A stretch of 64,000 bases of DNA from Marsupella aquatica. Taxonomy: Eukaryota > Plantae > Marchantiophyta. Shown one piece after another: positions 448 through 64,000 of this stretch (its first letter is position 1; the number at the start of each line of letters is the position of its first letter). The stretch lies in NCBI GenBank assembly GCA_973895155.1, contig OZ316899.1:1015573-1079572 (forward strand), given 5' to 3'. The notes below the pieces were generated by a model. That model was not told where the DNA came from. It made no database searches and saw only the letters and a list, made by a program, of their open reading frames with translations. Made by a program: the position numbers and the translations under genes.

Positions 448-1687
448 TGTGATGCCTAGCCAGGAATCACTAAGCCCGGTTTACATGGTAGAGCAGGAGT
501 GTACCCTGGAAACACCTTAGTATAGGACCAAAAACAAGGAAAATATAAACAATTAAGGGTGACTATGGAACCCGGGCCGAGGCTGGAAGTAAGGACGCCG
601 GGGGAGAGAACACGATTAGGGTTAGGGCGCGCTAAGCGTCGGCGGCTAGGGGTGACCAACGGGAGGGGAGACCAGAGGAGGAGAGGGGTAAGGACCGCTC
701 GCGAGGAATAGTGGCTCATTTGCAAGAACAAACTAGGCAAACGACTACGGGAGGCCAAATGCTGTTAGCTGCTTAGACAAGCACTCGGGGTGGGAACAAA
801 TACCAACGATCGACTCAAGGAGGGTATGAGCAACGTCAATCAAGCGGCACATTTTTGGGGATGCCTGTTCGAACGGGCAGGTGAGTACGTCAGGACTTAC
901 GAGGACGAAGAATCGGAGAGAGCAGCTCAAGAATGGCAGGAGCTCGCTCGGCTCTGGGAACTACAGAAGATGGCTTTCTTAGGAGGAGAACTTATCAAGG
1001 CCGAGTTCTTGTGGACTCCTACTGCCAATCAGCTTGACGACCTTCTGTTTTGCGAAAACAGAATCGTCGGCATCCGGGAAGCCATAAATCGCTGCAACGA
1101 CCTACACTGGGAGTTGAAGGGTAACACGGAGGGGTGGACAAAGGCAACCTTGCTAGGAGAAACATCCACGGTAGCCGAGATGAAGAGGAAAGGAAACAAC
1201 AACGAAGAGGCCACACCGGCAAAAAGAACGAGGTCGGCGGCACCTAGGAAGCCAGCAGAGCAGTAGAGCAGGACAAGGGGAGAAGCCGATGAGGAAGAGG
1301 TCGATCCCATCAATGCCATTCCAACAAACAATAACACCTGGAAAGGCTGGGCGGCGACCCTACCGGAGGAAGTGCAATTACACTTTGCACGGGAGGAGGA
1401 TGCATGCTTTACGGCCATGCAGACCAAGAAGTACCAAGGCTTCATGGCCGGATCCGGCTTGGAAGCCTTCGTAAGATTACCATGGCTGAAGCCGGAGGTG
1501 CCGGACTCAGACTTATTAGAATTCGTGGGATCATGGGAACCCGAGACCAATTCCACGAGGGTGTATGGGAAGGATTTCTATCTCACTCCCCGGGTGATTG
1601 TTGAGGTGTTTGGCTTGCCGATGGGTAATAAGACCAAGGTTGATACCAGGAAGACCTTACCTGACAAGGAGTTCTGGTCATTCCCAG
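448..1687 (+). mobile_element. 5' part of a family B' LTR, interrupted by the family D LTR
   Basis: Starts TGTGATGCCTAGCCAGG, nearly matching the family B LTR start TGTGATGCCTTGCCAGG at 36227; its ORF is homologous to 36465-36962. Confidence 0.8.
790..1687 (+). pseudogene. LTR-embedded accessory ORF of family B' (FW domain plus start of LPW/FGLP domain), disrupted and truncated
   Basis: 790-1266 QAAHFWGCLFERA..IVGIREAI matches 36465-36962; 1372-1692 GLEAFVRLPW..EFV..VFGLP matches the central domain of the 878-aa ORF. Confidence 0.7.
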
Positions 1688-4600
1688 TGTGAGATAAGGA
1701 TGTTTATAAAGAAGGGTTAACTAACCATAAATTTTAGAATTTTTACGTTTAAGATCTCAAATGAGGCTGAAGAGGGACCTGAAGACTACTTTGAAGTGTT
1801 ATGAGACTTTCAAGCCCATCTGAGGTCAACCCGGATTGATATTAGAGAAGGAGGATCGACCCGGAACTTTTTACTATAAGCCTTGAATGAGATATAAAGC
1901 TTATACCAAGACTCTACTCAACAACAGCTGTCCATTGCCAAAGTTTTTAAAACCATAAGTCAAACACAGGCACGACCACAGCAGAATCCGGATATAAGGA
2001 ATGAAAGTCGATCCGGCCTCTCACACCTCTCAAAGCCGAACTTAGTAGGTTTTGAGCTCCCGAGCGCATTAGGCTATTTAAGCAGTAGAGTGAGGAGGCT
2101 CTACCCTTTTGGTAGAGGATCTTGGGTCCGGATTATAGGACCAATCTTGCATTGCATGATGAGAGCCTGGATATGAGGGTACTGACTGATTCGTTGTGAG
2201 GGGAATGCCTACTCCACCGCTGGAAGTGAAGGCAGGAAGTTTGAGATCCTGATCGTGGATACATCGGTTGTGAGAAGGGAGGCCAGGTCGACCCGGACAT
2301 TACCATTGGAGGCCCGATTGAGTCCAGCGTTTCCCCATGGTAGATGACCCTGCATTGTGGTTAACAAAATCTTGATGCAATTTTTCCGAAACAATTTTCA
2401 GTTGATCAGAAACGCTGCTGCCAGGTCAACCCGGACATTTGTACCAGTGGTCGACACCGAAGAGATTGAACATTCTGAAGTCGCATCATTGTAGAGCTCG
2501 CCGTAGAGGAGGCAGAACATTTACCAGAAATCAATTTTCTGCTTCCAAAAATCCTATGGAGCAAGGGGCGGATCCAGCCAGAATGTCCACTTCTCGCGTC
2601 TCTAAGGGGCATTCAACCTCAACATCACCTGCACCTACTCCGGTTAAAGCCCCTGTGAGACGATAAAGAGAAAGGAGGTCCCCATTGCCATGAAAATTCT
2701 GAGGCCAGCTATTCCGGACAGTGAAGCTGAGAAGGTCAAACTGAGGGAGTCTTTGCTCAGGATGGGTTGTGAGTCTCTCATGGAGCTACCCTGGAGTTAT
2801 CAGAGCGAAGATATGGTCAGAGAGATCCAATCCAAGGAGTGTCCGGCTGAGTTTAAGGATACCTCCAGAGGCCGACCTGAGCGATGGACTCAGATGATGA
2901 TTGCAGGAGCTTTTGTATTGGAAGATGAAGAAGAAGGTCCAGTGGGGAGAGCTGTCAACCTAATCCTTCCTTACTTCAAAGGAGCCATCAACAGTAAGCA
3001 CGGGTTCAATGTTTCTAAGTGTTTGGATCCTGATCTGAGACGAGTCTTCAGCTTTCTGCTACCCCTGCTGTACCCTGAGAAGCCAAGAAGAGTTACTGTT
3101 GGAGTTGGCTCTACCATTGTTGCTGCTTACAAGGGAGAAAGAAAAGTCAACTAGGCTAAGCTTATCTTTGACTTAATAAGGAAGTTGGTACAGAACCTGT
3201 CCAACAAGAGTCCTACTCCCCTCTCCTGCTACCTGGCACATCTATATAGTTTTGAAGGAGTCTTGTTCAGAGAGGAGAAGAAATTACTATTGGCCAAGTT
3301 CAACTTCATAAAGTATGGAGAGACAGATCCAGATATCACCCAGGCCACCTCTGATGACAGTGAGGATGAGGAACCAGCAGAGACAAATCCTTGAAAGACC
3401 CGGTCTGCTGCCCGGAACCTCGACCCGGACTTTGCCGACCCGGCCTTCGTCGACCCGGCTGAATTTCCGGATGCGCCTGGCCATGCCTCCCTAGACACCC
3501 TAGCTGATTTCCAGATCATCTCAGATACATTCCAGAAGGTGAAGAGGAAGACCACTGTGATGGAGAAGGCCATCACTGACATTTCTCAAAAGTTAGGAGT
3601 AAAACCAGGGCAGATTCTTGAGAAGATCTCCACCATGAGTGATGCCATAGATAAGAGGAAGTTGGAGAAGGAGAATGAGTTCCTCAAGAAGAAGGTATCT
3701 GAACTCAAACAGCAGTTGGAAAGGAGTAAGAAGAAGAATGAGCTTGAGCATACTCTCCAACTCAGTATCACTCAATCTTTGGATCTGATTGAGCCTTTGA
3801 CTAAGATAGCTTCTCTGGATCTTCTTAAGGCCCAAATTTATGATGAGTATTTGGCCAAGAACACCACACCCATCCTTTTCTCCAAGATTAACCATTTAGT
3901 GGTAGATGTGAGTACCAAGGTGGATGATGCACTTACGGGTCTCTCAAAGACCTGTGAAGCCTTAAGGGAGATGAGTGACTTGACTACAGAGGAGCTATTA
4001 GCTGATACTGAGATTCCTGCCTTTACTACCAGATTTTTCTCTCCTAGTCCTCATGAAGGAGTCTATTCCACTGGCCCCTCATCACCCCTCAACCCTCCTG
4101 GTTTCCCCACTCCCAGTACACACTTCCACTCCCATTCTTACACTTATTCTCATGACCCAAGTGCCCATCAGGAGAACATGGATATTGACCCGTTCATCCC
4201 TTTTACCACTGGCCAACAGGGAGTTTTCCTTCGACCAGAACCCCTTGCCATGGCTAACCCTGAGGAGGTTCCTTCCCAAAAGCTAGGACCAGAATAGAGT
4301 TATATTTAGAGAGTTAGAGCCACATTAGTTTAGACTTAGAAATAGTTATATAGATTAGTATATGAGTAAGTAGACTCCAGTATTTTGTTGATGTATCCAT
4401 TGGAGACTCTACTCCATTTTTGACTAGGATAGTTCACTTTTATTTACATATTTCTTTAGACTTGGGTTTTGAAGAGGCATGTCTTTTCATAATCTCCACT
4501 TTTAGTACAAAAGGAGGAGAACCCAAAGTCAACCTTGGGAGAGAGAGATGCATTTGATTTCCCCATTTTGATTTTGGAGAAATCTATGTCTTTTCTTCCC

Positions 4601-5287: not shown

Positions 5288-6124
5288 CTCTTGCATGGCC
5301 TCCAGCCGATCAAGTAGCTTTTCATGCTTCCCTTGGGCTGCGGCCAAGGCCTTCTCGCTTTGAGTGGTCTGGTCTTTAGCCGCCTTCCTAAGCCTATCGA
5401 CTTGCCAATTAAGACCCTGTACCTCTTCCTTTGCATCGGCTAACTCCAACTGCACCTTTGTCAATTTCTCTTTAATCTGCTGGTTATCCAATTGGTAGTT
5501 TTCCAATTGGTTGTTCGCCACCTCTAATTCCTGCTCTTAGCCAAGAGATCCTGCTGTGCTTGTTGATCCACCCTTGATTTAGCCACCTCTGCTTCCATGC
5601 CACAAAACCGAGTGATCACTTCCTCCGTATCTACAAATGCCATTTTGTGAATTCCCCACAATTGCGCAAGCTTTGCTTGTTCTCTAGCTGCGCGCTCCGG
5701 CTCAACGTCTTCATACGTAGGTATCAGCTGCCTTGCTTCTTCAAGCAAACAGCCCCAAAACTTCCCTGCCTGATTCACCGTGTTCATTCCACCAAATGCC
5801 AAGAACTTGCGCAATTTCCCAATCCACCACATGCACTCGACTGACAGTCGCTCCTCAATGTCAAGACCGTGTACACGAGAATGCAAAATGGCAGAGTATT
5901 GGTCTCCTCACTTTGAAGTTGCCACTTGAAGGTCTTTGTGATCAAGCATGGATTAGGTCATAACTCAAATCCTGCCGGATCTCAACCGTTGGATCCTTTC
6001 CCTTATCATCTAACACGTAGTAATCGACATCAGTCTTTATTGTTACCTTATACTCTCTATCTATCCTTATTTAGCCATTATTTTAGGCTTAATTATTACT
6101 TCGTGATCCTGGCAAGGCATCACA
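5288..6124 (-). repeat. Partial 3' LTR of the family B element
   Basis: Direct repeat of ~14360-15193; starts TGTGATG on the minus strand. Confidence 0.9.
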
Positions 6125-7372
6125 TAGATCCCCACTTAATTGTGAAGCGTCCTCGCAAACATCTTCAAACTCATACATATAGTATTTTTTAAGCCTATCA
6201 TAGTGTATTCTTACAAGATAAATCTTGCCCGTGATATTGGCTAGTTGGACTGACCCATTGGAGAACATCATTTCCACCTTGTACGGTCCTAACCAGCAAG
6301 TGTAAAGCTTCCCAGGAAATTTTACATACCTGTTGTCATATAGTAACACTAGATCTCCAGTCTGAATACAGATTGGTCTTAACTTCTTATCGTATCACTG
6401 CTTCATTAGTTCCTGTCTATACTTCAATCTTTCTGATGCTATCAACCTAGCCTCCTCCAATGCTTCCAGTTGGTACAACCTTGCTCTCCTACTCTCGGCT
6501 TCCAACAGACGTTGTTGTATAGTAACTCGATAAGTGGGAACCTCCAACTCCATTGGTACCAAAGCCTCCTGCCCAAACGTTAGGAAATAAGGTGTATGTC
6601 CCGTAGTCGTCTTGTAGGCCAAGTTGTAAGCAAAAACAGCAGCGTACAGCTTGTCATCCCAGTCATCCTTGTGGTCAGATACCATCTTGTTTAGTATCTT
6701 ACCAATGATTCCATTTGCACACTCGGTAAGTCCATTGGCCTTTGGATGATAGGGAGTTGTAGGCCGATGCCGAACCAAGTATTGCTCATTAAGCCGACCA
6801 ATGATATCATTTAGGAAATGAGTCCCCTGATCGCTGACCAGCTCTAGAGGTGCCCCATACCTGGTGAAAATCTGCTCGTATAAAAATTGAGCTGTCGTGA
6901 TTGCATCATCCCTCATGGTCGGCCTAGCTTCCACCCATTTGGTCGCATAATCAGTGGCCAAGATGATGTACTTATTCCTTCGAGGATATGTTTTTGGTTT
7001 TAGAGGCCCAATGTAATCAATCCCCCACTTTTCAAATGCGGCAAGGGGTAAAATTGGATGCAATGGATGTCTACTGGCAGCCCTTGGTCCCCCCGCCCTT
7101 TGACAAGGATCACATTCCTTAATGAATTGATGAACATCCTTGTGCAAGGTTGGCCACCAGTAACCGACATCCAATATCTTACGTGTGGTAACTACTGGTG
7201 CAAAATGACCTCCGGCCTCTTCTCCGTGCATTGCTTCCATTACCTTCCGGGTATCATCCCTCTCCAAACATCTTTGGAGATTACCATATGCTCCATCCTG
7301 TGCAACACTCCCTTGATGACCTGATAACGTGCTGCCTTTTGCAAAAACACAACCTTCTGCTTTCTGGTCCAT
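6089..7372 (-). pseudogene. Integrase (zinc-binding domain, DDE core, GPY/F region), frameshifted
   Basis: MHGEEAGGHF, CDPC, WGIDYIGP, LVSDQGTHF, GLTECANG, WLGPYKV. Confidence 0.92.
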
Positions 7373-7584
7373 GCCGTATTCAGTCGTGCTGTACTCAAAA
7401 ATCCCAATATCTCAGGGTACTAGGTATTCGAATCCTCGATCTGAAATAATTCCTCATCCGGAAAACGGTCGTCAATGCAATCTGTTGCCGGGTCACCTGG
7501 TACTCTGGAGAAGAAATCAGCATTTGCGTGTAACTTCCCAGGTTTAATCCTTAATTCGTAATCAAATTCCTGCAATAGAAGTAT

Positions 7585-8100
7585 TCATTGGGCCACTCGT
7601 CTTGTAAGATCTGGCTTATTCACTAAGTACCTCAAACTTTCATGATCTGTATGGAAGATCACACGGTAACCCAATAAGTAATGTTGAAACTTCTTACATG
7701 AGTAAATGACCCCCAGCGCCTCCCTCTCTGTAGTCGTGTAGTTCTGCTCGGCTACAGCTAACTGTTGGCTTGCAAAATAGATGGGGTGGTCCTTTCCCTT
7801 ATCATCTAACTGACTTAGAACGGAGCCGATGCAGAACCCTGAAACATCCACAAACACATGAAAATCCTTATTCCAATCAGGCGCCATCATGACGGGTGCT
7901 TCAACCAACTTTTGCTTCAACTGTACCACAGCCGTAACCCGTTCAGGTGTTGCTTCAAAATCTGAACCTGTTTTGAGCATGTTGGTTAACGGAAGTGCTA
8001 GCTTGGCAAAATCCTTGATAAACCTTCGATAGTAACCAATACAACCCAAGAAATATCTGACATCTTTTATATTCTTGGGTTGCATGATATTGAGCCACAC
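7585..8100 (-). pseudogene. Ty3/gypsy RNase H remnant
   Basis: FHVFVDVSGFCIG, NYTTTEREALG, FHTDHESL. Confidence 0.9.
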
Positions 8101-8181
8101 GGCTTATTTTCCCTTATCAATTTTGATACCTTTTTTGGACACCCTGTGGCCGAGCAGGACCCCCTCAATTACTCCGAAAAA

Positions 8182-9399
8182 TCATTTATCCGGATGTAAC
8201 TTCAGTCCCACCTGTCTGCATCTTTTAAAGGTTCTTTGTAAGTACTTGGCATGTTTGGACGCCTTCCCAAACATAGCAAAATCATCAAATAATATCTCCA
8301 GAAACTTCCGGAGGGAATCATGAAATATGTTAACCATCAACCTTTGGAACATAGCTGGTGCATTACATAATCCGAAAGGCATCCGATTAAACACATAGAT
8401 TCCCCACTCAGGAATGAAAGCAGTTTTGATCTGATCCTCTTGCCTGATTCTGATTTGATTGTATCTAGAGTAGCCATCCATGAAAGAATACAACTCATGG
8501 CTAGCTACAGTGTCTAGCACCATATCAGTAAAAGGTAACGGAAAATTATCCTTCAAAGTGGAGTCATTTAGCTTCCTATAATCCTGGCAAACCCTTATCT
8601 TCGGCTTGCCATCCGGTCCTGCCTTCTTGGGTACAATGACAATAGGAGACACCCAGTCCAAATGGAGAATTGGCGTAATGAAGCCGGCCTCCACCAACTT
8701 GTCAATTTCTGCTTTTACCAACAAAGAATACTTTGGATTCATCCTTCTCATTGGTTGCCAAAACGATTTGGCTCCCAACATAAGGTCAATCCGATGCTCC
8801 CCCAATTTTGGGTCCACTCCTTGTAAATCAAGGTGACTCCAAGCAAAAACATCCTGGTATTCCACAAGTAACTCACTGATCTCCTTTTTGATTTTGGGAG
8901 CAAGATCCCTACCCAGATTTACCTCCCGACCCTCACCCAACTTGAGCTTCTTGTATTGCTTTGATTGAATCATGTTCATTTGCTTCTTTAGATTTGGATC
9001 TAGGTCTGCTTCCAACCAGGCCAACCTCATTCCTCCATATACTGGAATTTCAGGCTCCGTGGTTGTTTCCATCACCTCTGCTTTTGTCTCCCCACTGGAA
9101 GAAGTAGCTTCTTCAATGATGGTGTTGATCTCCACTGGAGTAGATTCGTTCGGCTTCAGCTTCTCTTTTAGCCTTAGCATTTTCAACCTCATTTTTTTAG
9201 TAGCCGGTCGACATCTTAGTCCGCTTGGAACAATTGACTCCAAACTCACCTTATTTATTGTGATAGCAGGTACTCCCTCTTGAATTGACTGCAACGCCTC
9301 CTGATTTGTCTGCGTAGCTGCCTGGTCTGACAAGTGAGTCTTTGTAATCGGAGTGACCTTTTTATCAACCAGCGCTGCCAACTCTGGCCACTGTGCCAC
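8182..9399 (-). pseudogene. Reverse transcriptase remnant
   Basis: WVSPIVIVPKK, CQDYRKLN, FMDGYSRYNQI, MPFGLCNAP, ILFDDF. Confidence 0.92.
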
Positions 9400-9421
9400 A
9401 GCGCTTGATAAAAATCCACCA

Positions 9422-12400
9422 TCATGGCGTTGGGATCCTTTGATAGAACAAGTTCCTCCACTTGAACCTGTGATTCATTTTCTTATCCATGATAATTGAT
9501 TCCAAAAAGGCGGCCTCAATTGCAAAGCAGCTGTCAGCCGGGACTTCCTGAAATTCTGAATCGCCTTCCTCTATGATGGGTTCCATCCGACTCTTTCTTG
9601 CTAACATTAGTGGAATTGAAATGGGCTCTTCCTCAAGTTCCGGAATGATTGGCCGCATGGAATCTGTGTCTCCCATCCAAAGTCCATTGGGGGGTGTATC
9701 AGGTCCAAACACACTCGCTTTTGATAAGCATTCCAGCCAACGCACATCATCGGTAGATTCTAACCCAGTATCATAGCCGTCTGCTTCCCGAATCATCCTG
9801 GCTGCTTCATCCTCTACCTCCCATGACATGGTAATAGGTGGAGTTCCGAATGTAAACTGTTTTGTGCCCCAATTTTCCACAACTTTCGCAAGGTACAACC
9901 AGGGTCGCCCTATCAACATCGTAAATGAGGTAGGGTTCACCGGCTTCATCATAATGTAATTAATGTTGAATGCAATACCATCAATCTCTGTGCGTATTCC
10001 TCAAAGAATGCCAGTGGGAACAACTTGGTAGCCATTAGCCATATTCAATACCCTACCAGTCAATTCTGGTTTTAAGCCCCAAGCCGCTGCTGTTGAATCA
10101 ATGAGTATGCATACCCCAGACCCTCCATCGATTGGTACATGCATAACCTTTTCTTTATTGATGATGACTGGTAAGCAAGGGGCTCCCCTATTCTCCTGAA
10201 TCATCATGACATCCGTACGAGTGGCTACTCTAGGAAGCCTCGGGTTCCCGACAATGGCTTTTTTCAATTGCTTCCAAAAATACGGGCTATTTTTTAATAA
10301 TTGACCCACAGTAGCCGTAACGCGTGATTCCAACACATCCTTTGCCAAGTTGTATGGCACCAACTGTTTCCCTGTGTCACCCTCCTGGGGTAATTTAATT
10401 GCTCTAATAGGATTCTCCTCAGTTGGTAATGATTCTGGTTCCTTTGGTTCTAGAGGTGTGCTTGGTGAAGTTAGTGGTGACACACTTCTGTCCTCCACTG
10501 TTTCCATTGAAGCGGAAACAATTTCCTCCTTCATTTGCTTGACAGCTCTCTTGATATCCTTCTGGAGTGCAACCTCATTCTCGTCCTTTTCCAACTCTAC
10601 CAATTGCTCCTTCACACTAGTCGTGACTGCCGGAAAAAATAAACTTGGATGCGTTCAATCAAAATCACTATCCTGGGAAGGACTGGGATCACCAGGTACA
10701 ACTTGCGGGTCCTCAGTGACAGGGGCTTTGCCACTAGAACCCAAAGACGTGGAATCAGACGCATCTTCCTTCCACAGCTTCTTTTTCTTGGTAATCCCCT
10801 CCCACCTTTGCTTCCTTCTAGTGGATCTAGTGGACACACGGTAACAATCGGCATCAACCTCTTCTTTGGAATAAGTGGACAGGGCGTCTGCTTCATCGTC
10901 AGAAGGTGCAAATTCCCCTTGTGCTTCTTCACGCCATCCTAAGTCAATATGATTTACCTTGGCTCCTCCTAGCATAGTTCCTGCTGGCAGTACCTTTGGT
11001 GCGATTTTGATAGGTACAGCAGCCATCCCGGCTAACCAAATAGGGCATTGGGTAAGTATATGCCCTTCTCCTTTGCAACCCATACAAAGCTTGACTAGCT
11101 GACCATCCGCCTGCTTCCTTGCATTGGTGCACTCCCGGGAGAAGTGACCTGGTTGACCATAGTTGTAGCATGCTGCAAATCTCTGAACATTTGGTTGTGG
11201 AGGTGTAGTTGGACTTTGAATGATGCGTGGATACATCTCCCCTGCATTGGTTCTCAATGCTCCCCACAAAGAGGTGGGTCGGTTAGCCAAATCTTGGGCT
11301 CCGGCCTCATTGATGCCGAACACACTATCCGCGGCATCTCCAAGTATGTACTCCACCTCCAACTCTCCTATCGTTCCCTCGGTTATCAATCAAACATGCT
11401 TTTTACCACGCTTTGGACAGACATCCTTGTGATGTCTGGTGGTATAACAGTGAGCGCACCATACTAAGGTGTCATCGGCTGCCTCCCTCTTCTTTGGCTG
11501 GGAGTTGGCTAATAACGTCTTTAACTGCTTTGTGATCGCTGTCAATTGATCCAGAGATGCTTTCTTAGGATCAACCTTGGTTCTCACCTTCTCCACAGCC
11601 TTATCCTTCTTTTTGAATTTCTTTTTTTACTCTTTTCATCATCCTCCAAACTGGAAGATGTTTCACTCTTACTAGTATCACTCTCAGAGCTACTACTCTC
11701 CTCCTTGGCTTTCTTGGATCGCTTCTTCTTGGCCTTTTTCTTGCCTGATTCCTCTTCTGAAGATGAATCCTCAAACTTATAGTGCTTTTTCCGGCTTGTG
11801 ATATCAGCATTGATGTATAGCTGAATATCACAAATCACCTCTACCAAAGACTCCGGATTCCCCTTCCAAATTGCGAAACTCATCTTGTGAGGTAGGGCAT
11901 TAACCAACCACTACAACTGCATTTTGTCTGATGCATTGGTCTTGGTTCGTCGCACCAATTTGTGGAATTGCTGCAAAAATTTCTGGAAAGACTTGTTCTC
12001 CTTGAATTGAAGCCGTCCTAGCTTCAACATTGCCAATTCAGACATCCCAATGGGATGGAATTCCTTGACAACCAGCTGCTTGAAGGTGACCCATTCATTC
12101 TGCTCCCCTGGTTCCAAATTGGAGTACCATGGTCGAGCATCTTGATAGCAGACTCTCCATTAGCAGTTGCAGTCCCATCAAACTCCTCAAGCCAGTCATC
12201 CGGGTCCTCCTCATGTTTACCATGAAATGCCTTGTAATGGATTTGTGATCTCTGACTGGGCCGTGGTGCTGCTCGCCCACCAAATTGTGGATCCGGCTCA
12301 CCCATCTCTTGCACTGGTGAACTGGGTTGGGTACTGGGCGCGTTACTACTCAACAGATCCCCTTCCTTGTTCTCCAGTTCTACTCCAAAAGCACTTTGTG

Positions 12401-12521: not shown

Positions 12522-12558
12522 CTAACACTGCGCAACAAACAATTCACAGGTAAGAATG

Positions 12559-53828: not shown

Positions 53829-53920
53829 TTACTCATATAAATGCAATGGTTAGTACTACGTCCTGATGTATCCTGCCTAGGTGAATACGCACATGTCTCC
53901 CCTCTACGATATGTAGAGTG

Positions 53921-53939
53921 CCCCCTCCATCTAGCGCCA
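53921..53939 (-). promoter_or_regulatory. Primer binding site, tRNA-Asn type
   Basis: TGGCGCTAGATGGAGGGGG on the minus strand, 12 nt from the 5' LTR end. Confidence 0.85.
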
Positions 53940-53951
53940 AAACAAAGGCTA

Positions 53952-56900
53952 TGTCACATCGTAGGCTTCGGCCTTAACTCAGACTTCAGCTTAGACGGGC
54001 ACATCCCTCGTAAATCTGAGGGTTCGGGCAGGAAGGGAAGCACGTAATGCACCTTATTCTCATAAACTAGCGCTAAGTGCGCATACTGCTAAATACGGAC
54101 ACCTCCTAGGTATGGTTTGTGTTCCGCCGCCGGAACGTACCTTAGTCGATAGCAGGATCGACCCCGGCTTAAGGGCTTCTAAGCCTTCGTGCTGTCCGCC
54201 TTCGATCCGGATTCGATGATACAGGTTCTCAACCCGTGCTCGCAACCACTTACCCGCAGGCTGCACCCTGTGCACGTCTCGGGTAGTGCGTTCGGCCCGG
54301 CGCTGCCACCCATATACGAGAAACCCACACACATATGCGCACACATGCATACAATCTCGATTTACACGAAGGAAAAATGATGGGAAAGGATTTTTACTAC
54401 AAAGGGAACATATGCGTACACTTAGTTGACACGACAGCCCTGGAATGCACAGGTTCAAGGCCAAGGGTGCACACTACAACGGAGCCCGGCTCCGCACTCG
54501 CCCGGCAAGCTTAGTCCTACCCCCTCCCCTTGGTACTCTGTCATTCCTAGAGGTCGGGACTCCCCGCATGTCCCGCGGATGTCCGACTCTGAAACTAAAA
54601 ACCCCCCCTGCCTCTACCGAGGGGTGCACTAAATACTAAGAGCCGAGGAACGGGGCGTCCTCCCGCCGAAGATTCGCTGACCAAGGTCCTAACTAAGCTG
54701 ACAGTCAGGCCGGAAAACGGCTGTGTCTTATTAGAAGATCCTAATCTACGCAGGCTGGACAGCAGGGCAGCGCTGCCGTACCTAAGGCAGGTGCCTGTCC
54801 CAAGAGCCTGACTAAGCCAATCCTAATCCTAATCTATTCCTACTCCGCCGCTAATGCCTGGCACGCTTGCCAGAGCCGCCCGAATGGGAACGGCCATCCC
54901 GCTGCCTTCGAAGCCTGTCATTGTCCGCTTTGAGGAGCTGGACCTGGTCCAGCAGAGATTCGTTCTCTCGCCTCGCCGCGTCCGTCTCCTCTGCTGCCTC
55001 CTGACATGCCTCCTCCAGCTGCTGGGCGTCGCTCGCCAGTTTACTCGCCAGCTGGTCCTGCTTCTCGGCCTCGGTTTGGAGCCGCGCCATCTCGGCCTGC
55101 AGCGTGGCTATCTCCGTCGCATCCCGCTGGGCTCGCTCCTCGGCCTCCTCCAGGTCTTTCTGCCAGGTGACAGCTTGTTTCTTCAAACTGTCAATCTGGT
55201 TCCGGAGTCGTGTAATCTCGGCCTCGTTCCCAGCTTTGGCCTGTTCGGCTAGGGCGGTAAGAGCGTACGCCTTTGCTAACAACTCATCGGCGGCTGCAAC
55301 CTTGGGTCGTAGTTGCAGAAGCTCAGCCTCTTGAGCCGCCACTTCGTTCTTTAGGTACACGGACTCCTCCCGGTACCGCTCTATCCTCTGAAGGGCCTCC
55401 GACTGGGCCCGCCCTGCCTTTACGGCGGCAACCAACTCCTGATTGAAGAAACAGGCTACCTTCCGAGCCATGAACTCCCCGGTATCCCGGGCAATTTGAT
55501 GAGAGAAATCTCCCAGAAGCCCGTTCAGAAACGTACCCTGTACGAAGAGTTCCGGGTGGTCCAAGTTGTGCCTGTCCGGATTTGGGCACGGGCAGACATC
55601 AACACGCGCAGGGGCCGGGGCAGTGACGTCCAGCCCTGGGGACATAACGTTGGAAGGGGCCGGAGTATCCTCCTGCAGCGATGTCCGGTTCTCCGGAATT
55701 GCCACCGGCGGGTCCTTGGGAGACCCGGGTTCGGGTAAGACCTCTGCCGTACCAACTTCTGTACTTAGCCCGGCTAGTTGGGTCGCATCAACGGTTGCGA
55801 CGACCGACCCCTCCGGCGCCTCCTCGGTTACGATTACAACTATTTGTGGAGGTGGGGTGGGTGAAGCTGGCGTGTCCACTGGACTTCGGGCCTCGGGTTG
55901 GGGCCGTCTCTCCAATGCCAGAAAAACCCACCTAGCTGGGACCAGCTTTGTAACGTTGATGCGGGGAAGGGTTCGTCGATCAAACCGGGCATACCACTCA
56001 AGAATGATTTCGATGTGGCTAGCGAAATACGCCTTCCCGCCAATGTACAGCGTCTTCCTTCGCCGCTCCATCTCTTCATGGAATTTCTTAGCGAAGTACG
56101 ACGCCCACTTCCTAGGTCGATAGTTCTCGACCTGGATGACCTGGGCGGCGGAGATCTCCCCCCGGGGTTCCATCAAGTGGAGAGCGTACCTCTGGAACTC
56201 CAGCCGCTCAGCTATCTCGGGCATGAGGCAGGTCCTCATCACGAACCCGTTGTCTACTGATCCCTCTGAGGGAAAACTTGAAGATTGGTACTTGGCCCCC
56301 TTGCCCCCGGGAGCCCGTGATTCGACTCGATGGTCACCTTCGGGTAACCCGAAGATCATCTTGAGCCGTTCTTCTGTGAGGGACATATTCCTTCCCCGCA
56401 GCCGAGTCTGTTGACGTACGTCGTCATAATTCTTGACGAATTCTGTCATGTCCTCCCCGTAGTACCTGCAAGTGTTCCAGGGGAGAGAGGCGAGGTGCTC
56501 AAATCCCTGAGTCTTCAGGTACACCGCATGCTTGGGATGGAGGATGTTGCTGTGAACGTTTTCCCCCATGCGATGCATCGTTACCTTGGCTACGGCTACC
56601 GTGGCTAACGGTAACCCGGATGCACTGGCGGATTCCTTTCTCTTCTTTCCCCGTGACTGACTCGGGGAAGGTGATACTTCCCCATCCTCCCGATCGGGCC
56701 TGGGGAGTGCCACTGCGGTTGGTAACGGGCCCGGGGCGGCCACGGTCACCATGTTGTCTGCTGGGGCCGCTCCTGGGGTCAGAGCAGGGGGTGGGGACGG
56801 TATAGTGTCGGCCCCCCGAGCGCTTGTTCCTCTGGGCCGCCTGGTCAAGGGTGGGGTAGCCTCGTCGTCATCGCTAAGATCCACAGCGTTGATGACGGAG

Positions 56901-57953
56901 CGTACCTGTGCTGGCTGGGTGATAGGTGGTGGGGTTTGGCTAGGCTGCGGCTGAGGCTGAAGCTGAAGCTGAGGTTGCATGGGCACGGGTACGGGTACGG
57001 GTCCGGCTGAGTTGGTCATGTTGGTTGATGGCCGAGTTCCCATGAAGCTCTGTAGGTGCTGGTAGAAGTTCTCCGAAGCGAGTGCGGACGCCCTTGTCGA
57101 ACGGTTGGTACTGGACTCGCCGTTAATGACTGCCCGAACCTGGGCAGGGATGTGGTCGAAGTGATGTCGCTGCAGGTCGATTGTACCCGGGATATTGAAG
57201 ACCTCGTCCGAAAGCCGAAGCAATGCTTCCCAGAACCCGATATATTTGTCTCCGTCAAAGAAGTACCCAGATACCTCAGCTGGTCGGTAAAGCTCGCTCT
57301 GAGACGGGTAGTCAAAGTTAAGGACGTAGTGGTGTCGTCCTGCTAGGCGGATGGCTCTCTCGTATTCGCGTTCGATCTCGTATCGGCGTGGGTTGGCGTG
57401 TTTCAATGAATCGGCCAAGTGCCTTCCGGTAGATAGGAACTGCGTCCAGAATCGAATGGCCGAGCTGGAGAGGATCGTGTGCGACATTCAAAGGAGATAG
57501 TAGTGGCGACCTAGAGAGAACGAGAGAGCTGGGGTCGAAGCTGGCGCGCGGACTGATGGACTGGTGCACTACAAAGGGTTGGCTCCCCTTTTATACTTTG
57601 AGGGCTTGTCGATCCCCGACGTCTCCTCGACGCCCATAGGTTGAACCGCTCACGCTTGTGGTGTACCGGCCACTCCGCCGGTCTGAGTCAGCGTGCGTCA
57701 GTGGCCGCTTCCTTAAGTTCGTTATACGGACCCGAGGGAGGGGCCACTCCATGCTCATAACCCGGGTGTGCGAATAGCGACCCGCCGCCAGCCCGAAGCT
57801 GAAGTCCCCCTTATTGCCTAATGATGTCCTACCCCTAATGATTACCTAAATACTGTCGTTATGCTAATAATAGCGGCCTAAGACCCACCTAACGCGCGTG
57901 CCGAGCGCAGTTAGACTGAATCACTCATTAACCACCGTACCGGCGGCGTCACA
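53952..57953 (-). repeat. 5' LTR of element A (4002 bp)
   Basis: Direct repeat of 43863-47864; followed by PBS and gag. Confidence 0.97.
54851..57487 (-). CDS. 878-aa LTR-encoded accessory protein (5' LTR copy)
   Basis: Intact; 10 amino-acid differences from the 3' LTR copy. Confidence 0.9.
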   Translation of the reverse strand: MSHTILSSSAIRFWTQFLSTGRHLADSLKHANPRRYEIEREYERAIRLAGRHHYVLNFDYPSQSELYRPAEVSGYFFDGDKYIGFWEALLRLSDEVFNIPGTIDLQRHHFDHIPAQVRAVINGESSTNRSTRASALASENFYQHLQSFMGTRPSTNMTNSAGPVPVPVPMQPQLQLQPQPQPSQTPPPITQPAQVRSVINAVDLSDDDEATPPLTRRPRGTSARGADTIPSPPPALTPGAAPADNMVTVAAPGPLPTAVALPRPDREDGEVSPSPSQSRGKKRKESASASGLPLATVAVAKVTMHRMGENVHSNILHPKHAVYLKTQGFEHLASLPWNTCRYYGEDMTEFVKNYDDVRQQTRLRGRNMSLTEERLKMIFGLPEGDHRVESRAPGGKGAKYQSSSFPSEGSVDNGFVMRTCLMPEIAERLEFQRYALHLMEPRGEISAAQVIQVENYRPRKWASYFAKKFHEEMERRRKTLYIGGKAYFASHIEIILEWYARFDRRTLPRINVTKLVPARWVFLALERRPQPEARSPVDTPASPTPPPQIVVIVTEEAPEGSVVATVDATQLAGLSTEVGTAEVLPEPGSPKDPPVAIPENRTSLQEDTPAPSNVMSPGLDVTAPAPARVDVCPCPNPDRHNLDHPELFVQGTFLNGLLGDFSHQIARDTGEFMARKVACFFNQELVAAVKAGRAQSEALQRIERYREESVYLKNEVAAQEAELLQLRPKVAAADELLAKAYALTALAEQAKAGNEAEITRLRNQIDSLKKQAVTWQKDLEEAEERAQRDATEIATLQAEMARLQTEAEKQDQLASKLASDAQQLEEACQEAAEETDAARRENESLLDQVQLLKADNDRLRRQRDGRSHSGGSGKRARH

Positions 57954-58221
57954 CAGACTATTACCCTTGTGGAGTTACTCGAACCAGAAGACATCCGACA
58001 GCAAGCTTGAGGAGTAGTCTAAGTGTTTTTAGTTAGTTTTAAGAGTAGTGCATCTTATCTGATTTTTATAAATGCGTTCTAGAGCTTTGGAAGCTGTCAT
58101 ACTTCTTCAGTATATAGTTTGTACCTAGGAAAGCCTGCTGGCAAAACCTTTGAGTTTTCTGACTTATAGTTAGGAAGTTAAAAATAGTTGAATTCATCAA
58201 GTCTTTAAGAATACCGCATTA

Positions 58222-58312
58222 CAAGTTTACTAGTTTAAGAGTTACTAGTTTACGATTACGAGTTTTGCTAAGTAAACTTCTTACGAGTTTACTAGTTTAC
58301 TAGTTTACGAGT
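58222..58312. repeat. Degenerate 8-bp tandem repeat GTTTAC(G/T)A
   Basis: Repeated GTTTACTA/GTTTACGA units. Confidence 0.75.
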
Positions 58313-59399
58313 TCATACTTACCCATTTTTCCGGCTTTTCACTTATTGAATCGCCATTTTAACTTTTTGAAGGGTATGAAGAGGCATGTCTCTTTGACCC
58401 CGTGACCTCTCACTCGGTAGATTTTGACTATAAGATAACTCTACCACTAGTGTAGATTATGGTTAAGTTGTGCATTTTTGCCTCTCCCTCTTGTTAAGTA
58501 TTGATTCTGAACCTATGAGTTCTAAATCAGGCTTAATAACAGGAGAGACTTACCTCCTTCTTGTGTTTCTACACTTATCATAAACACAGGAAGTAAAATT
58601 GCATTTGTAAGAAATCTTTGGATCTTGTGATGACAGATTCCTCCTTGGTGACTCATTACAAATTCCTAAGTTCTTAAAGTTAACTCATTGAGTTTATGTC
58701 TTAATGAATTTGATGGATTTTCTTTCATGATACTTAGTACCATCTAAATGTTGAAGTAGCTACCTTTTAGATCTTATCTGAGTACCACTTAGAAAGAAAG
58801 GATAAGACATGTTGACGGCATTTTAAAAGGTACTCTAGTAAGCATTTTAGATCTGAAAAGCAAACGTGGATTTGAATCCTTAAGTTTTTTCATTTTGACT
58901 TATGTCTAAGGAGAAACCTTGGTCTATTCCAGACTCCCTTAGCATACTTTAAGATATTTTTGGTGTATTTTGTTAATCGTTCCCTTTTCATTAATTTATG
59001 GTTACCCAATGCTGAGTTACCATTAAAAACTACTCACCGCTGTGGAGCGATCTTCAAAATACCTTATTAAAGTAATCAAACTTGATTACTATGTGTGGAA
59101 AACATTTTTAGTTCTTTATTATTGTTTAAATCTATCAAACCAACCCCATCTTGTTCTTTACGGGAACGAATACCGAGTTTGAAGACCTTTAAGTATGTTT
59201 TTGGTTCTTCATAGCAAACTACATTGATTACTATCAATCCTCAGGAGAGAGAACTCCTTGGTGAGGTTATGCCAAATCAACATCTTATTTGATCTTTTTA
59301 GTACCAATTTGCTTTTCATTCACTCTTACACGGAATGAATTCAGGTCTTTAGAAGTTAAAGTGTTCTTTAACGGTCTGACCACTCTACCACATGCTTTT

Positions 59400-59415: not shown

Positions 59416-60027
59416 AAGTGACCTGAGAAGTGAAGGTACTTTGATAGATTTGAGTTGTGCAGAGGTTGAAGTAATCAAAGGAGACCATTTCTAGAGAGAC
59501 CCCTCCTGAGTGGAAGGCCTTCAGAGCAAGCAGCCTCGAATCAATTCAAGTCAGTATTGGACGGAAGCGGTGCAATCAGCATAATGGAAGGAGTATATTT
59601 GAATGGATATGTTGATTCCGTAGAAGAATCTGAGCATGAAAAACATTCATTAAACTCCAGAAGCAAACCATATACAATCTTCAATGCTTCTAGAGCCTTC
59701 CAAGTGGAGTATGTGCATGCATTGGAGACCATGGATTTTGAAGAAGATCACTTTCCTTTGAAAGAACGGAAATGATTAATTGCAAAAATGAAGAGAATTC
59801 TAGCAAAGGGAAGCCGAGATTCAAAGAGGCACTCCAACAAGGAAGTATAGAGGAGTGGGAGTGAAATCCGGATTGTAGTGATATCCGGATTTTGAAGGAA
59901 GGATTGTGGTGATATCCAGATTTGGGAGGAAATCCGGACAGAAGGAATATTTCCGGAAGAGTCATCTCAAATTGGTAATAGTAAGTTGTTGATGATTGTC
60001 GAGACTTGTAGGCCAAGATGAGTAGGT

Positions 60028-61512
60028 ATGAGCGGAGTACCTTCAGGTGAAGCGGAGGAAACCGAGGAAGTTCCAAGTCAAGATCTTCACTCTTCCTCTC
60101 TACCACAAAGTGATTACGGGAGTCCACAGAACCCCCGTGTTGGTGCGGTATCTTCAGTTCTAGGATTGTGGACGAGCGGAGGAACACCAGACCAACCAAC
60201 CAGGACTAGACCTGCATACATGAATCTGAGGTTTGGGCCTAAACTCGTCATGCCTTCTCTTAGGGGAAAAAGAAGGACTTTGGCGCAACCGAGTACAACT
60301 TCAGCACAAACTCTGGCAACGTCACCAACACCACCACCACCAGGAGGACTTGCAATGGTGAGCCGGTTGAGAATTCAATACGATTACTTCAGAGGGAAGA
60401 AGTCTAACTTTGAAGCCTGGATGGAGAATTTTGAGGCTGTGGCGATGTCCAACGGAGATGATGCACCGGATATAAAAGCTAAAATTTTTGGAGGTCTCAT
60501 GAGAGGAGAAGCCAGAACATGGTACTCTAACCTGGAAAATACAGCTGATTGGGCTATGGTTAAACCAGAATTTCTGAAGGCCATCCGAGAAGATGGAGCC
60601 ACTGCTCGGGCCTTTACCCGATTGAATTCCATAATGATGAAGAAGGCGGACTCCTTGAGTGGTTACCTCCAAAGGATTAACAGGCTAATCAAGAAAGTTA
60701 CACCAGCTCCACTGGCTTACTTGATCAAGAAATGGTTTATCCAAGGCCTCTACCCTGGACTAAATAAGTTTGTGAGAAGGTCCAATCCTACCACGTTGAC
60801 TGAGGCTTATGATGTAGCTCAATCTTATATAGATGCCAATCTCTCCCAAAGGTCCCAGCTGGCAAAGGAGATAGAAGAAGAAGAAAGGAAAAAGAAAAAG
60901 AAGTCTAAGAAAAAGAAACAAGCCAATTCTTCCTCTTCTGAAGATGATACATCTAGTGAGAGTAAGGACAGTGGAGATGATACAGACAGCACTGATGAGG
61001 AGGAGGTGAAATCCAAGAAAGTGTCCATTGTAAAACATGCAAAAATGGCAAAAAGTGAAGGCAAAATGGTAGACATCATGGAGGGTCTTGCCAAACAGAT
61101 GAAGGGATTGGCAGTAAACCTTGCGATGAATAACCCACCATGGAGGCCCTTACAACAACAGAGGTACAATGTGTGGTGCGCGGTTTGTAAGAAAATGGGC
61201 CATTACCCTAATGAATGCCCTAGCTCAAAGCAAGTGAATTACATTGCAAGTGAAGATTATGAGGGTGAGATGGACTGTGATCCGGAGTTCCAGAGGTATG
61301 AAGATTCAGTGTACCAAGTTCAACCTCAGGGCCTTGTACAATACTTCCCTAGACCACCAGTAAGAGCTCAAGGAGGACCTAATAGACCTGTCTATAAGCC
61401 ACCTATGGCGCCACCAGGAGGATACCCACCACGAGGAACTTTGCCAAGAGGTGTATGTTGGAATTGTGGAGATCAGTCCCATTTTCACCAAATGTCCGTG
61501 GCCAAAGTGTGA
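60028..61512 (+). pseudogene. gag of family G, truncated by the family F LTR insertion
   Basis: FEAWMENFEAVA..GEARTWY gag core, CAVCKKMGHYPNEC and partial CWNCGDQSHF knuckles; the stop codon is supplied by the inserted LTR. Confidence 0.88.
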
Positions 61513-64000
61513 CACGGGTAACGTGTCACTTAACCAAACCCAGGTCGTAGATTAGGTCTTATACGGTCATTAGGACCATAGCCGTAGCGTAGAATAGCAC
61601 GTATAGCCGTCTGTTGCCATTATGAATAGATTAGGAGTAGGTTAAGTTGACAGAATGATTACGAATTTAGGAGGAGGATTATTACGCGCGACCAAGGTAC
61701 AGTGGCGGCGACGGAGTAAAAATCCGTTAGGAGCATCACGCTTGGACCGAGGCGCCGACTTCAGCTCATTACTAACGACCAAAATGGCCTGGCCTTCTCA
61801 CGCTCGGGCTCACCCTGGCACCTCCATAAGAGAGGAGCCAATGGCACTGCGGGCCATTTGCTCATTTCTACCTTTCGGAATTTGTGGACGCTGCCATTCA
61901 CTCACCTTTTTGCTCGAATCAAGCTGACCTTTACAAGGAGATTATCGAGAGATAAGAGCGGGTTGTGGCGAGATTTAGTTAGGACAAGGAAGGCCTCCAC
62001 CAGTAAGCAGACCAAACAGCGGGAACGCGGACTCGACAAACTAGACTACAAAGGTTAGTATGACCCTTACAGCCTTGGGATTTTGGACCTTGTTTGGCGA
62101 CGTAGGTGCTAAGTTCTCCAAGACTTACTAGTACTCTTGTCCCGAGAAAGCCGCTTATGAACGAAGATACGCAAAGCTGGTGGCCAAGGTAGCACAGGTT
62201 AATTGCGAGAAGACAGCCATCACCAGAGATTCCAGCTACAACGAGCTGCGAGACTACATCACCGAGCTATATCTCAACGAGGAAGGGCTTAGATCGGTAG
62301 CAAAGGCGATTCTTGAAGTCCCCGCAAAGTTCTTTAGGCTAAAGGGCAGCCAGCGGCTTACTCAAGCGGAGTTTGACAAGATCCCGGGGTACCTAGACCA
62401 GCAGATCGCAGCCGAAAGGCGCCAAGAAGACATCAGCAGACAACGGGAAGCGGCGCGTAACCTTACGTTCCTCGGGGAAATGTCCAACGCCTTCAACTGG
62501 GATATGGCAACACCAACACCACCAGCGCCTCAGCCGATGACCACCGGCGTACCACCGAACCAGTCCCAAGTCCGCCCCGTGAACAATACCGAGTGTTCTT
62601 TGGGTTTCGAGCGAGTTAGTCCGCATCTCGAGCAGCGTTCTTGTAAGCAGGCAAGAACGACGCCGGCACCCAAATCGACAACACGAACCAACGCCGCTCC
62701 TGCACCTGCCCCAACAAACCCCCCGGCCAACCAGACCCGACGGCCCCCGGATAATCCCAAGTCTAACTTATTACAGGTAATCCGCGTTCCCGAGGTAGTC
62801 TGGATCGCGATCAAGAAACTCAACCACACGGAATATCTCAAGGAGCATCAGTTAGAGCAGTTCGCTCACTTGCTATGGAGACCGTGCTTGGCCGGGCCAA
62901 AGGAGATTTGTGAGTTCATCTCCAATTTCGACACCGACGCATCGACCACTAAGGTTTCAGGGCAGACCTTATCACTCACGGAGCATCGGTTGGCACAGAT
63001 CTTCTGCATGCCAAGCGGACCGGTGCCGGTTGAACTCCGAATTTGGGATGAGGAGTATACACCTCGACACTTCAAACCCGAAGGTAAGACAAACAACGGA
63101 TACAAGCAGGGGTCATGCACCAACTTAATCTGCATGGAGCGGCTTAACTTCATACGGACTACCCTACACATGATTGAGCCACGATCCAAGATTTCCCTCT
63201 GCACGATCGTGCAGGTGGAACAGTACAAACGGCGGAACTGGGCCCAATTCTTTTACCGAAGGTTCTCGGGAGAGCTTAAGCGGGCTCAGGGAGGTATGGC
63301 TATTGGGGGGAAGACTTACTTGGGAAGTCATATCGCCATCATCCTCGCCTGGTACAAAGCACGGCGGGAGGCCAGGGGAAAGAATATGGCCACCTCAGCC
63401 CCGACTAATGTCACCCCCGCCCCAGAAGAGGCAACCCCAAGTGGGCGGACTACCGTCCCTTGGGCAAACCCCAAGCCGGAGGCCCCGACTAATACTCCGT
63501 CACCTCCTCCTGTCAAAATTCCGCCGCCCCCTTCCGTCGAGCCTCCGCTACCCGCAGTACCACCACCCCCAATTCCTCCACCACCTGAAGAAACCTTCCC
63601 CTCCCCAGCGCAGACTACGGAGGAGATCATTGCCCCGCCCGAGGAACCACCGGTACCCGAGAGGATGGAGGACTACCAAATAGCCCCGGAGACCATGGCC
63701 TACGACCTGGTCCAGAAGTTTAGCCAGACTATGTTTGGGGAGCTGGCGATGTACATCGAACAACAAGTCTCGACGTACTTTCAACCAGCCTTCTTCATGT
63801 TAGAGCACCAACCACGGATCGTCGGCCGCTTGGAAGAAGAACTCATGGCGAAGGGGAATGAGATCGGGCGACTCCAAATGCTGGTGGAACACCTCGAGGA
63901 GGAGGCCACTACCCGCCGCGAGGAGTTAGCCCGCACCGTCGAACAGCGAGACGGACTAACCCAGGAGTTGAGTGGGGCACAAGCAGATCTCAAGAAGCTG
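61508..64000 (+). mobile_element. Family F LTR (5' part, runs off the window)
   Basis: Starts TGTGAC in the middle of a gag knuckle; carries a homologue of the 878-aa ORF. Confidence 0.8.
62060..64000 (+). pseudogene. LTR-embedded accessory ORF of family F; one early TAG (62129-62131), otherwise open to the window end
   Basis: Manual translation: ALGFWTLF, EFDKIP, YLKEHQLEQFAHLLW..EFISNFD..LAQIFCMP, RRNWAQFF, IGGKTYLGSHIAIILAWY, Pro-rich linker, coiled coil. Confidence 0.85.

Follow-up and report, generated by a model that had tools for sequence, protein, structure and literature searches.

A sense-strand protein gene inside the long terminal repeats of liverwort Ty3/gypsy retrotransposons

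The extra open reading frames (ORFs) that plant long terminal repeat (LTR) retrotransposons carry are poorly understood and have been described in the internal region only. A 64-kb stretch of DNA from the liverwort Marsupella aquatica (hereafter the window; all positions are coordinates in it unless another locus is named) raises the question of whether such a gene can be housed in the LTR itself. Elements were mapped by self-BLAST and by protein mapping, and the window was found to consist of nested Ty3/gypsy LTR retrotransposons. One of them, element A, carries an intact ORF in each of its LTRs, and relatives of this ORF are found in other LTRs of the window and in a second liverwort. We show here that a clade of liverwort Ty3/gypsy elements keeps a sense-strand protein gene wholly inside the LTR, and this selected gene departs from the internal location described so far. 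Extra ORFs are a kind of gene already known in plant retrotransposons; the novel feature is the location in the LTR. The observation is real and robust, and from it we infer how the gene is expressed, what its protein does and how it is linked to the Athila elements.

The gene in the LTRs of element A

Element A comprises the following features (aa, amino acids; nt, nucleotides).

43863-57953, minus strand: element A, with two 4002-bp LTRs that are 99.5% identical (99.475% by self-BLAST, 21 differing positions)
53952-57953, minus strand: 5' LTR, 4002 bp, beginning TGTGACGCC and terminating GTGACA
43863-47864, minus strand: 3' LTR, with the same ends (TGTGACGCC ... GTGACA)
54851-57487, minus strand: intact LTR ORF of the 5' LTR, 878 aa, with FW domain, LPW domain and coiled-coil tail
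44762-47398, minus strand: intact LTR ORF of the 3' LTR, 878 aa
57588-57595 (5' LTR) and 47499-47506 (3' LTR), minus strand: TATA box GTATAAAAGG, also conserved in the related element A'
53921-53940, minus strand: motif TTGGCGCTAGATGGAGGGGG, resembling a primer-binding site (PBS), 12 nt past the end of the 5' LTR
47832-53828, minus strand: gag, protease, reverse transcriptase (RT), RNase H and integrase (INT) in a single reading frame

The ORF is on the sense strand, begins 466 nt into the LTR and stops 900 nt short of the LTR end. Since it lies wholly within the LTR, the full element carries two copies, which are 98.9% identical at the amino-acid level. Direct repeats with TG...CA-type ends (TGTGAC...GTGACA) enclose gag-pol in element A, and the same was found in element B of the window and in locus L002 of Calypogeia fissa, a leafy liverwort. 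AGTC is present on either flank of element A, which reads as a 4-bp duplication or as a 5-bp duplication with one mismatch. A Pfam scan of the internal region returned gag (Retrotrans_gag, zf-CCHC), protease, RT, RNase H and integrase domains and no chromodomain. The gag-pol frame contains one stop at about 50406-50408 (minus strand), which replaces a conserved RT tryptophan; pol is thus broken in an element with 99.5% identical LTRs and two intact LTR ORFs.

The start of the 3' LTR overlaps pol. It follows directly on a purine-rich block, and the pol ORF extends 11 codons into the LTR. A conserved purine-rich block stands immediately 5' of TGTGA; it precedes the 3' LTRs and is situated at the end of pol. 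The overlap between the pol C-terminus and the LTR start (about 11 codons) is found in the window at 47832-47900, 6092-6162 and 17310-17350, in L002 at about 19900-19945 and in L007 at about 5663 (minus strand). The block directly before TGTGA, TTTGCG.GGACGCT.CACAATTAAG..GGGA.CTA, is conserved over families and species. The PBS-like motif TTGGCGCTAGATGG lies 4-12 nt past the LTR end in A, B, L002, L004 and L007, with sites at 53940 (minus), 12578 (minus) and 31347 (plus) of the window, 13655 of L002, 11887 of L004, and 13871 and 18250 (minus) of L007. Because it recurs after other LTR ends, both in the window and in the second genome, this motif marks the primer-binding region. A tRNA scan of the window found no tRNA gene, and hence no tRNA was paired with the motif. 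Its form TTGGCGCTAGATGGAGGGG is identical across the elements of the clade in the two genomes.

Selection on the ORF was analyzed by comparing A with the decayed copy A'. The ratio of nonsynonymous to synonymous substitution rates (Ka/Ks) was 0.23 for the whole ORF, 0.13 for the N-terminal domain and 0.10 for the central domain; the tail gave 0.23 and the linkers 0.30-0.38. The identity profile of the A and A' LTRs peaks in the central domain (84-92%) and the tail (85-94%), is 76-81% upstream of the ORF, and is lowest (55-75%) just 3' of the ORF, at LTR positions 3079-3669. Purifying selection acts on the ORF, and no other part of the LTR is as well conserved.

One protein family in several LTR families

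The protein is composed of an N-terminal FW domain of about 130 aa, a proline-rich linker, the LPW central domain, a second linker and a C-terminal coiled-coil-like tail. The FW domain is restricted to the A, B and F types, and is not present in D and D'. A preliminary description of this DNA had claimed that the protein family recurs in at least five LTR families. All the motifs on which it relied, IGFWEALL, VGIREAI, FDHIP and FDKIP included, were found in frame; those of the two domains are listed here.

57463 and 47374, minus strand: SAIRFWTQFL, N-terminal, A
14841 and 5772, minus strand, and 36579, plus strand: QAGKFWGCLL, N-terminal, B
841: QAAHFWGCLF, N-terminal, B'
62069: TALGFWTLF, N-terminal, F
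56509 and 46420, minus strand, and 18803, plus strand: QGFEHLASLPW, central, A and A'
1453: SGLEAFVRLPW, central, B'
62849: QLEQFAHLLW, central, F
2762: MGCESLMELPW, central, D
39313: MGCAKLMELPW, central, D'

The LTR copies other than those of element A are as follows.

15194-21336, plus strand: A', a relative of A with 78.7% LTR identity, interior mostly missing
15194-16607, plus strand: truncated 5' LTR of A', retaining the C-terminal part of the ORF (15190-15826)
17343-21336, plus strand: 3' LTR of A', preceded by the end of pol (16607-17343)
17816-20453, plus strand: LTR ORF remnant of A', with frameshifts and stops
29597-30904, plus strand: 3' fragment of an A-like LTR, with the coiled-coil end of the ORF at 29604-30007; 3' of it, the PBS-like motif at 31347 and a gag fragment at 31667-31903
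5293-15197, minus strand: element B
12583-15193, minus strand: 5' LTR of B, about 2.6 kb, ORF start at about 14856
5293-6124, minus strand: 3' LTR of B, truncated at 5293, sharing the ORF deletion junction of the 5' LTR
36227-37141, plus strand: B-family LTR fragment with undeleted FW domain (ORF 36444-36959), interrupted by a C-family LTR
448-1692, plus strand: B' region, LTR start at 448 (TGTGATGCC)
826-1692, plus strand: B' ORF, FW domain and first half of the central domain, stop at 1264, decay past 1690
2690-4297, plus strand: D, D-type central domain and coiled-coil-like tail, two stops
38621-40203, plus strand: D' region, LTR start at 38621 (TGTGATACC), abutting a C-family LTR
39070-40203, plus strand: D' ORF, 377 aa, first ATG at 39145, D-type central domain
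61508, plus strand: F LTR start (TGTGACACGG), abutting a gag truncated inside its zinc knuckle
62060-64000, plus strand: F ORF, full A-type protein with one stop at 62129, continuing past the window end

At the DNA level, only A and A' could be aligned (78.7%); B, B', D, D' and F align neither with each other nor with A. At least six non-alignable families (A/A', B, B', D, D' and F) carry pieces of the protein, which upholds the claim of at least five. Counted from the shared terminus TGTGAYRY, the ATG lies at 466 nt in A, 473 in A', 337 in B, 378 in B', 524 in D' and 552 in F. The ORF is therefore situated a few hundred nucleotides inside the LTR start, as had been described, in all of these copies; the description does not extend to D, in which no LTR start was recognisable. 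For B', D' and F, the LTR status within the window is read solely from the terminus motif and the junctions with neighbouring elements.

The homology of the proteins was established in several steps. In tblastn searches of the window, the A protein matched the central domain of F at E 1.8e-31 and its N-terminal part weakly (E 0.006), B' at E 1e-5, A' with 68-74% identity in shifted frames, and two C-terminal remnants at 15190-15826 and 29604-30007. A hidden Markov model (HMM) of the N-terminal domain, built from A, A', F and the library protein P0022 and run on about 1000 sequences, matched the B fragment with an E value of 2e-5; the values for both B LTRs and for B' were 4e-3 and 0.016. The central domains of D and D' are 38% identical (E 3e-44). 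Pairwise comparison of D/D' with A/F was not significant, the reciprocal top HMMER matches having E values of about 0.5-1, and thin profiles gave an hhalign P of 5.7e-4. With profiles of 16 A/F and 48 D domains, hhalign gave a probability of 98.5% and an E value of 4e-15 over 168 columns; the members of these profiles had first been retrieved by a joint profile, each being unambiguous in its own subtype at E 1e-20 to 1e-70. The hhalign register is that of a MAFFT alignment of the window copies alone. The profile-profile comparison between families was thus significant, and no complete element had a homologue in its internal region.

When the protein library was searched exhaustively by HMMER with the joint profile (alignment A1), 423 proteins matched at E<=1e-3, 183 of them at E<=1e-10. 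Word-indexed searches with the whole A protein, with its central region and with a 64-sequence profile returned essentially no relatives; low-complexity words and the length window defeat the word index, so that the exhaustive search was needed. Scored with separate HMMs, the 423 relatives divide into two clear subtypes, A/F and D, and several bridging members match both subtype HMMs (P0022 at 1e-31 and 4e-5, P0106 at 4e-6 and 1e-19). The named relatives were all 'unnamed protein product' entries of C. fissa (GCA_965154635.1), the others coming from Logan, ENA or JGI assemblies. No named cellular protein was present among the relatives sampled.

The C. fissa loci showed the same arrangement. 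L002 is a complete element, the pol of which is 68% identical to that of A. The PBS motif at 13655 marks the end of its 5' LTR, which houses an A-type ORF (10001-11557), and the same LTR sequence resumes past the polypurine block at the end of pol. In L004, an element with a pol 55% identical to that of A has the conserved polypurine/LTR junction, and a D-type ORF starts 812 nt past it; the LTR concerned may be a chimera with the following element. L007 has one ORF after the polypurine/LTR junction and two upstream of PBS motifs that are followed by gag. Among the window and the C. fissa loci examined, there was no case of the ORF between the PBS and the polypurine tract. Since pol DNA identity between the window and these loci is just 72-76%, the window holds none of the same families as C. 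fissa.

In an RT-INT tree, which leaves out A' (pol end only) and the gag-only elements, the ORF-bearing elements form three clades with 37-68% RT-INT identity: A, B and L002; the first element of L004; and L001 with the upstream element of L002. All three are apart from the ORF-less C lineage. The C family, with an internal RT at 24650-26973, is a distant Ty3/gypsy lineage (RT-INT 31-35% identical to A). Its 1.46-kb LTRs, at 21339-22800 and 28148-29595 and, reversed, at 32916-34349 and 37141-38620, lack the ORF, as checked by translation, and therefore serve as an internal negative control. A weak HMM match at 21716-21913 in a C LTR was considered as a relic domain and rejected, because translation showed nothing similar. 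The occurrence in at least six LTR families, in three pol clades and in a second genome, together with purifying selection, supports the proposal that the gene is an old trait of the lineage and not a one-off capture.

Expression, function and origin

We favour, with moderate confidence, a reading in which the gene is a selected LTR-borne gene within a self-contained LTR unit, encodes an accessory protein that acts in trans, and is a counterpart of the extra ORFs of Athila/Tat elements. Its first part concerns expression. The exact TATA box GTATAAAAGG is the sole one in the 4-kb LTR of A; it stands at LTR position 359, some 107-108 nt 5' of the ATG, and is separated from the ORF by a CT-rich, ATG-free leader. 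This arrangement is kept in A'. Downstream of the ORF in the A LTR, neither a TATA box nor AATAAA was found. Because the only TATA box lies 5' of the ORF and the leader is CT-rich and free of ATG in both A and A', we read the LTR as a self-contained transcription unit. Transcription would start upstream of the ORF, making each LTR a self-contained unit of promoter and ORF. This would place the ORF in the repeat and unique 5' regions (R/U5), at the head of LTR-initiated RNAs as their first cistron. Transcripts that end in the same LTR would give an ORF-only mRNA, which 3' LTRs and solo LTRs could make as well; alternatively, transcripts would read through as genomic RNA. The Logan contig L005, for which RNA and DNA are not distinguishable, has no informative ends for placing the transcription start or the poly(A) site.

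The second part concerns function. AlphaFold2 confidently modelled the central domain as a globular alpha/beta fold of about 200 aa (predicted local distance difference test, pLDDT, 89.5 and predicted template modelling score, pTM, 0.83 for A; pLDDT 95.3 and pTM 0.91 for D'). The near-invariant columns of this domain are almost all aromatic or aliphatic, with no invariant catalytic-looking residues, which fits a binding module rather than an enzyme. The A/F-type central domain is basic (median pI 9.5). The linkers contain 13-17% proline and the basic patches KKRK and KRAR, and the C-terminal 190 or so residues are proline-free and heptad-rich, with weak matches to coiled-coil Pfam families. 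A Pfam scan of single window ORFs returned coiled-coil noise only, and a sequence-profile search of PDB returned no match. The most likely role of the protein is that of an accessory factor of the nucleus, without enzymatic activity, that oligomerises and binds nucleic acid or chromatin. It would serve its family in trans, for example by shielding it from silencing or by handling RNA or DNA.

Element B bears on the action in trans. In its 5' LTR, the first 45 or so residues of the FW domain are fused straight to the coiled-coil region, and the central domain is deleted. As both LTRs share the deletion, the element transposed with a gutted ORF, and the gene is not needed in cis. The protein, if it is needed, therefore acts in trans, since this copy was reverse-transcribed and integrated. 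The deletion junctions common to the two LTRs are at 14686 and 5617, and most of the ORF is gone. In L002, imperfect palindromic repeats GCGCTTA...TAAGCGC are present in variable number at about 19990-20260 and at 8850-8990, at the LTR start upstream of the ORF; they are candidate protein-binding sites.

The third part concerns origin. The gene would be the liverwort counterpart of Athila/Tat-type extra ORFs: with the polypurine tract sited at the end of pol, the ORF falls inside the LTR, and this would be the sole structural difference. The pattern EF...G...FGLP had been noted in the preliminary description as resembling an Athila-type 'plant transposon protein', with which it is in keeping. 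PF20167 (Transposase_32, annotated as a putative plant transposon protein) was the sole Pfam family matched by more than one member (5 of 64 at E<=5, all D-type), and residues 99-185 of P0111 are colinear with positions 76-162 of its 177-position profile. PF03078 was matched by no member, and DUF1985 and DUF287 were not recurrent in the Pfam scans of the members, in which neither was listed. PF20167 is reported from the sense 3' extra ORF of an Athila element in a sunflower study, which relates it to PF03078, ATHILA ORF-1 (PMC11728184). The weak D-type matches speak for the Athila-type resemblance, and their sub-threshold scores and restriction to the D type speak against it; it is a reasonable lead and not an established homology.

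Several facts weigh against the favoured reading. The exact TATA box is confined to A and A'. In B, F and L002, TATA[AT]A is missing 5' of the ORF, and the TATA boxes of L004 and L005 sit at other distances from it. An ORF in R/U5 would require minus-strand strong-stop DNA of about 3.6 kb and would put gag behind an 878-codon ORF, both of which are unusual. The D-type central domain is neutral, not basic. Among the window ORFs and 64 members, none scored above any Pfam threshold; the PF20167 matches are below it (best E 0.0016; 15.7 bits for P0111 against a gathering cut-off of 45 bits), and none of the 16 A/F-type members matched this family. Foldseek searches of PDB and BFVD gave no match at E<=0.001.

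It is possible, at clearly lower odds, that the ORF lies instead in the unique 3' region (U3). The genomic promoter would then be confined to roughly the final 0.9 kb of the LTR, a spliced or sub-genomic RNA would serve to express the ORF from the 3' part of the element, as for the retroviral genes sag and nef, and the ORF would descend from a 3' extra ORF of Athila type that the LTR took in when the polypurine tract moved to the end of pol. The ORF is indeed where 3' extra ORFs sit relative to pol, 0.4-1.6 kb downstream on the sense strand, and the polypurine block overlaps the pol C-terminus. Neither 3.6-kb strong-stop DNA nor an 878-codon ORF before gag would have to be assumed, and no TATA box would be expected 5' of the ORF, as in B, F and L002. 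The sag gene of mouse mammary tumour virus (MMTV) lies entirely in U3, and nef of the human and simian immunodeficiency viruses (HIV, SIV) overlaps U3; to our knowledge, all precedents of retroviral LTR ORFs are in U3. Like these genes, the liverwort gene encodes an accessory protein, is physically in the LTR and is duplicated upon integration. It differs from them in its plant host, in its much larger product (878 aa) and in showing no similarity of sequence or fold. However, the TATA box 5' of the ORF in A and A', the sole one of their 4-kb LTR and followed by a clean leader, argues against a placement in U3 such as that of sag. The stretch 3' of the ORF, where the promoter would have to lie, has neither TATA box nor AATAAA in A, and its positions 3079-3669 are the least conserved of the LTR.

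A further reading, which we consider doubtful, would make each LTR an autonomous cassette of promoter, ORF and terminator. The product would be a family-specific VANC-like anti-silencing protein, a DNA or chromatin binder that dimerises through its coiled coil and can be expressed from solo LTRs. The LTR-borne state would be the evolutionary source of the 5' and 3' extra ORFs of seed-plant Tat/Athila elements (PF20167), through nothing more than shifts of the PBS or polypurine-tract boundary. VANC21 of the DNA transposon VANDAL21 is a sequence-specific DNA-binding anti-silencing protein (PDB 9lnj). Its DNA-bound structure was the top Foldseek match in PDB for the central-domain model of A (template modelling score 0.45, 198 columns, E 0.9, probability 0.41). 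As a fold relative VANC21 was rejected, the match being non-significant and absent from the top 50 listed for the better D' model; since it was not reproduced with that model, it is kept only as an analogy. Both proteins are transposon-encoded, and a non-enzymatic accessory role is proposed for the liverwort one; the transposon classes are different.

An origin by capture from the host, as a gene or domain that has relatives in the cell, is improbable; the ORF would then have come into the LTRs by transduction or by LTR recombination between families rather than by ancient vertical inheritance with the elements. One homologue is suggestive of this. P0099, an A/F-type protein of 295 aa with a central domain and a short coiled coil, is encoded at 5617-6504 of an ENA metagenome scaffold (L008; 7516 bp, 60% GC), beside a 1490-aa DEAD-box helicase gene, and the 7.5 kb contain neither gag nor pol. 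In addition, ORF type and pol clade are imperfectly congruent: the clade closest to A in pol has a D-type ORF, and the L001 clade, which is more distant, an A/F-type one. The L004 LTR also looks chimeric. However, wherever an assembled genome allowed the context to be examined, it was an LTR of this clade of elements, the ORF stands at the same offset from the LTR start in six non-alignable families, and no named cellular protein was among the relatives sampled. L008 itself may represent a solo LTR; otherwise, the copy may stand outside a transposon, in another organism of high GC content.

An artefact would be another reading, in which segmental or tandem duplications pose as LTRs, or chance frames in GC-rich repeats as ORFs. 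In its favour are the heavy nesting, several fragmentary copies and the pieces B', D, D' and F, which are not provable as LTRs within the window. It is effectively refuted by the exact LTR termini beside the polypurine block and the PBS-like motif, the Ka/Ks of 0.1-0.23, the 423 library relatives, the high-confidence fold predictions and the same architecture in a second genome.

Comparison with internal extra ORFs, and neighbouring features

The liverwort gene is an additional conserved sense ORF in a Ty3/gypsy element, as extra ORFs are, but does not lie between the PBS and the polypurine tract. Like the Athila 3' extra ORF, it is a sense accessory ORF shortly 3' of pol, in Ty3/gypsy elements with no chromodomain detected; unlike it, the liverwort ORF is 3' of the polypurine tract, within the LTR, and hence duplicated. 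The liverwort protein also differs in having an additional FW domain and a long coiled-coil tail. The 5' extra ORFs (ORF0 of Retrosat2, RIRE3 and RIRE8, and that of Tekay) belong to the internal region, where they separate the 5' LTR from gag (PMC3485330, PMC11728184). The copy in the liverwort 5' LTR is likewise upstream of gag in sense orientation, and the LTRs are unusually long (>3 kb) in both cases. The proteins are also alike in being partly disordered and proline-rich, with patches resembling nuclear localisation signals (PMC3485330, PMC11728184). The liverwort ORF differs in lying upstream of the PBS, and no sequence similarity to the 5' extra ORFs was detected.

A review places extra ORFs 5' or 3' of gag-pol in the internal region, as with Retrosat2 ORF0 (PMC3485330), and mentions no ORF located in the LTR (PMC7264820). 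Liverwort Tat elements have been covered without mention of LTR ORFs (PMC13468544). In the literature library searched, which is incomplete, we found no report of an LTR-borne protein ORF in a plant retrotransposon; 'LTR-encoded' there referred mainly to animal retroviruses and vectors such as MMTV, and never to a protein ORF of a plant element.

The location alters the notion of an LTR, in that every LTR is a possible gene and a solo LTR a possible expressed gene; each insertion, and possibly each solo LTR, brings a copy of the ORF. It also raises the mechanistic question of how reverse transcription proceeds with a multi-kilobase R/U5 or U3. A simple route for the interconversion of 5' and 3' extra ORFs is suggested, namely a shift of the polypurine-tract or PBS boundary. 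The well-folded domain, with hundreds of members, is a tractable family for studying the roles of accessory proteins. Genome annotations of liverworts are expected to include many 'unnamed protein' genes that are really LTR ORFs, and annotation tools that rely on LTRs may set element boundaries wrongly.

Some features of the window concern the surroundings of elements A and F. The gag ORF at 60028-61512 (494 aa) is cut within its CCHC knuckle exactly at the F LTR terminus. It shares 76-81% DNA identity, over two short stretches, with the gag of the Calypogeia element that has a D-type ORF, and the stretch upstream of it resembles that upstream of the first gag of L004. Short tandem arrays of TTACGAGT / TTACTAGT are located at 41738-41809 and 58219-58313, on either side of the A insertion, which is also flanked by repeated motifs similar to ATCCGGATTT, with further sites at 39077-39106, 40871-40927 and 59870-59931. 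The presence of these arrays and motifs on both sides of A suggests that A was inserted inside one long D'-type LTR or leader reaching the gag at 60028. An alignment of the D' LTR start with that of L004 was discarded as a mere AT-rich resemblance. A relative of the C family, in reversed orientation, occurs in Calypogeia L004.

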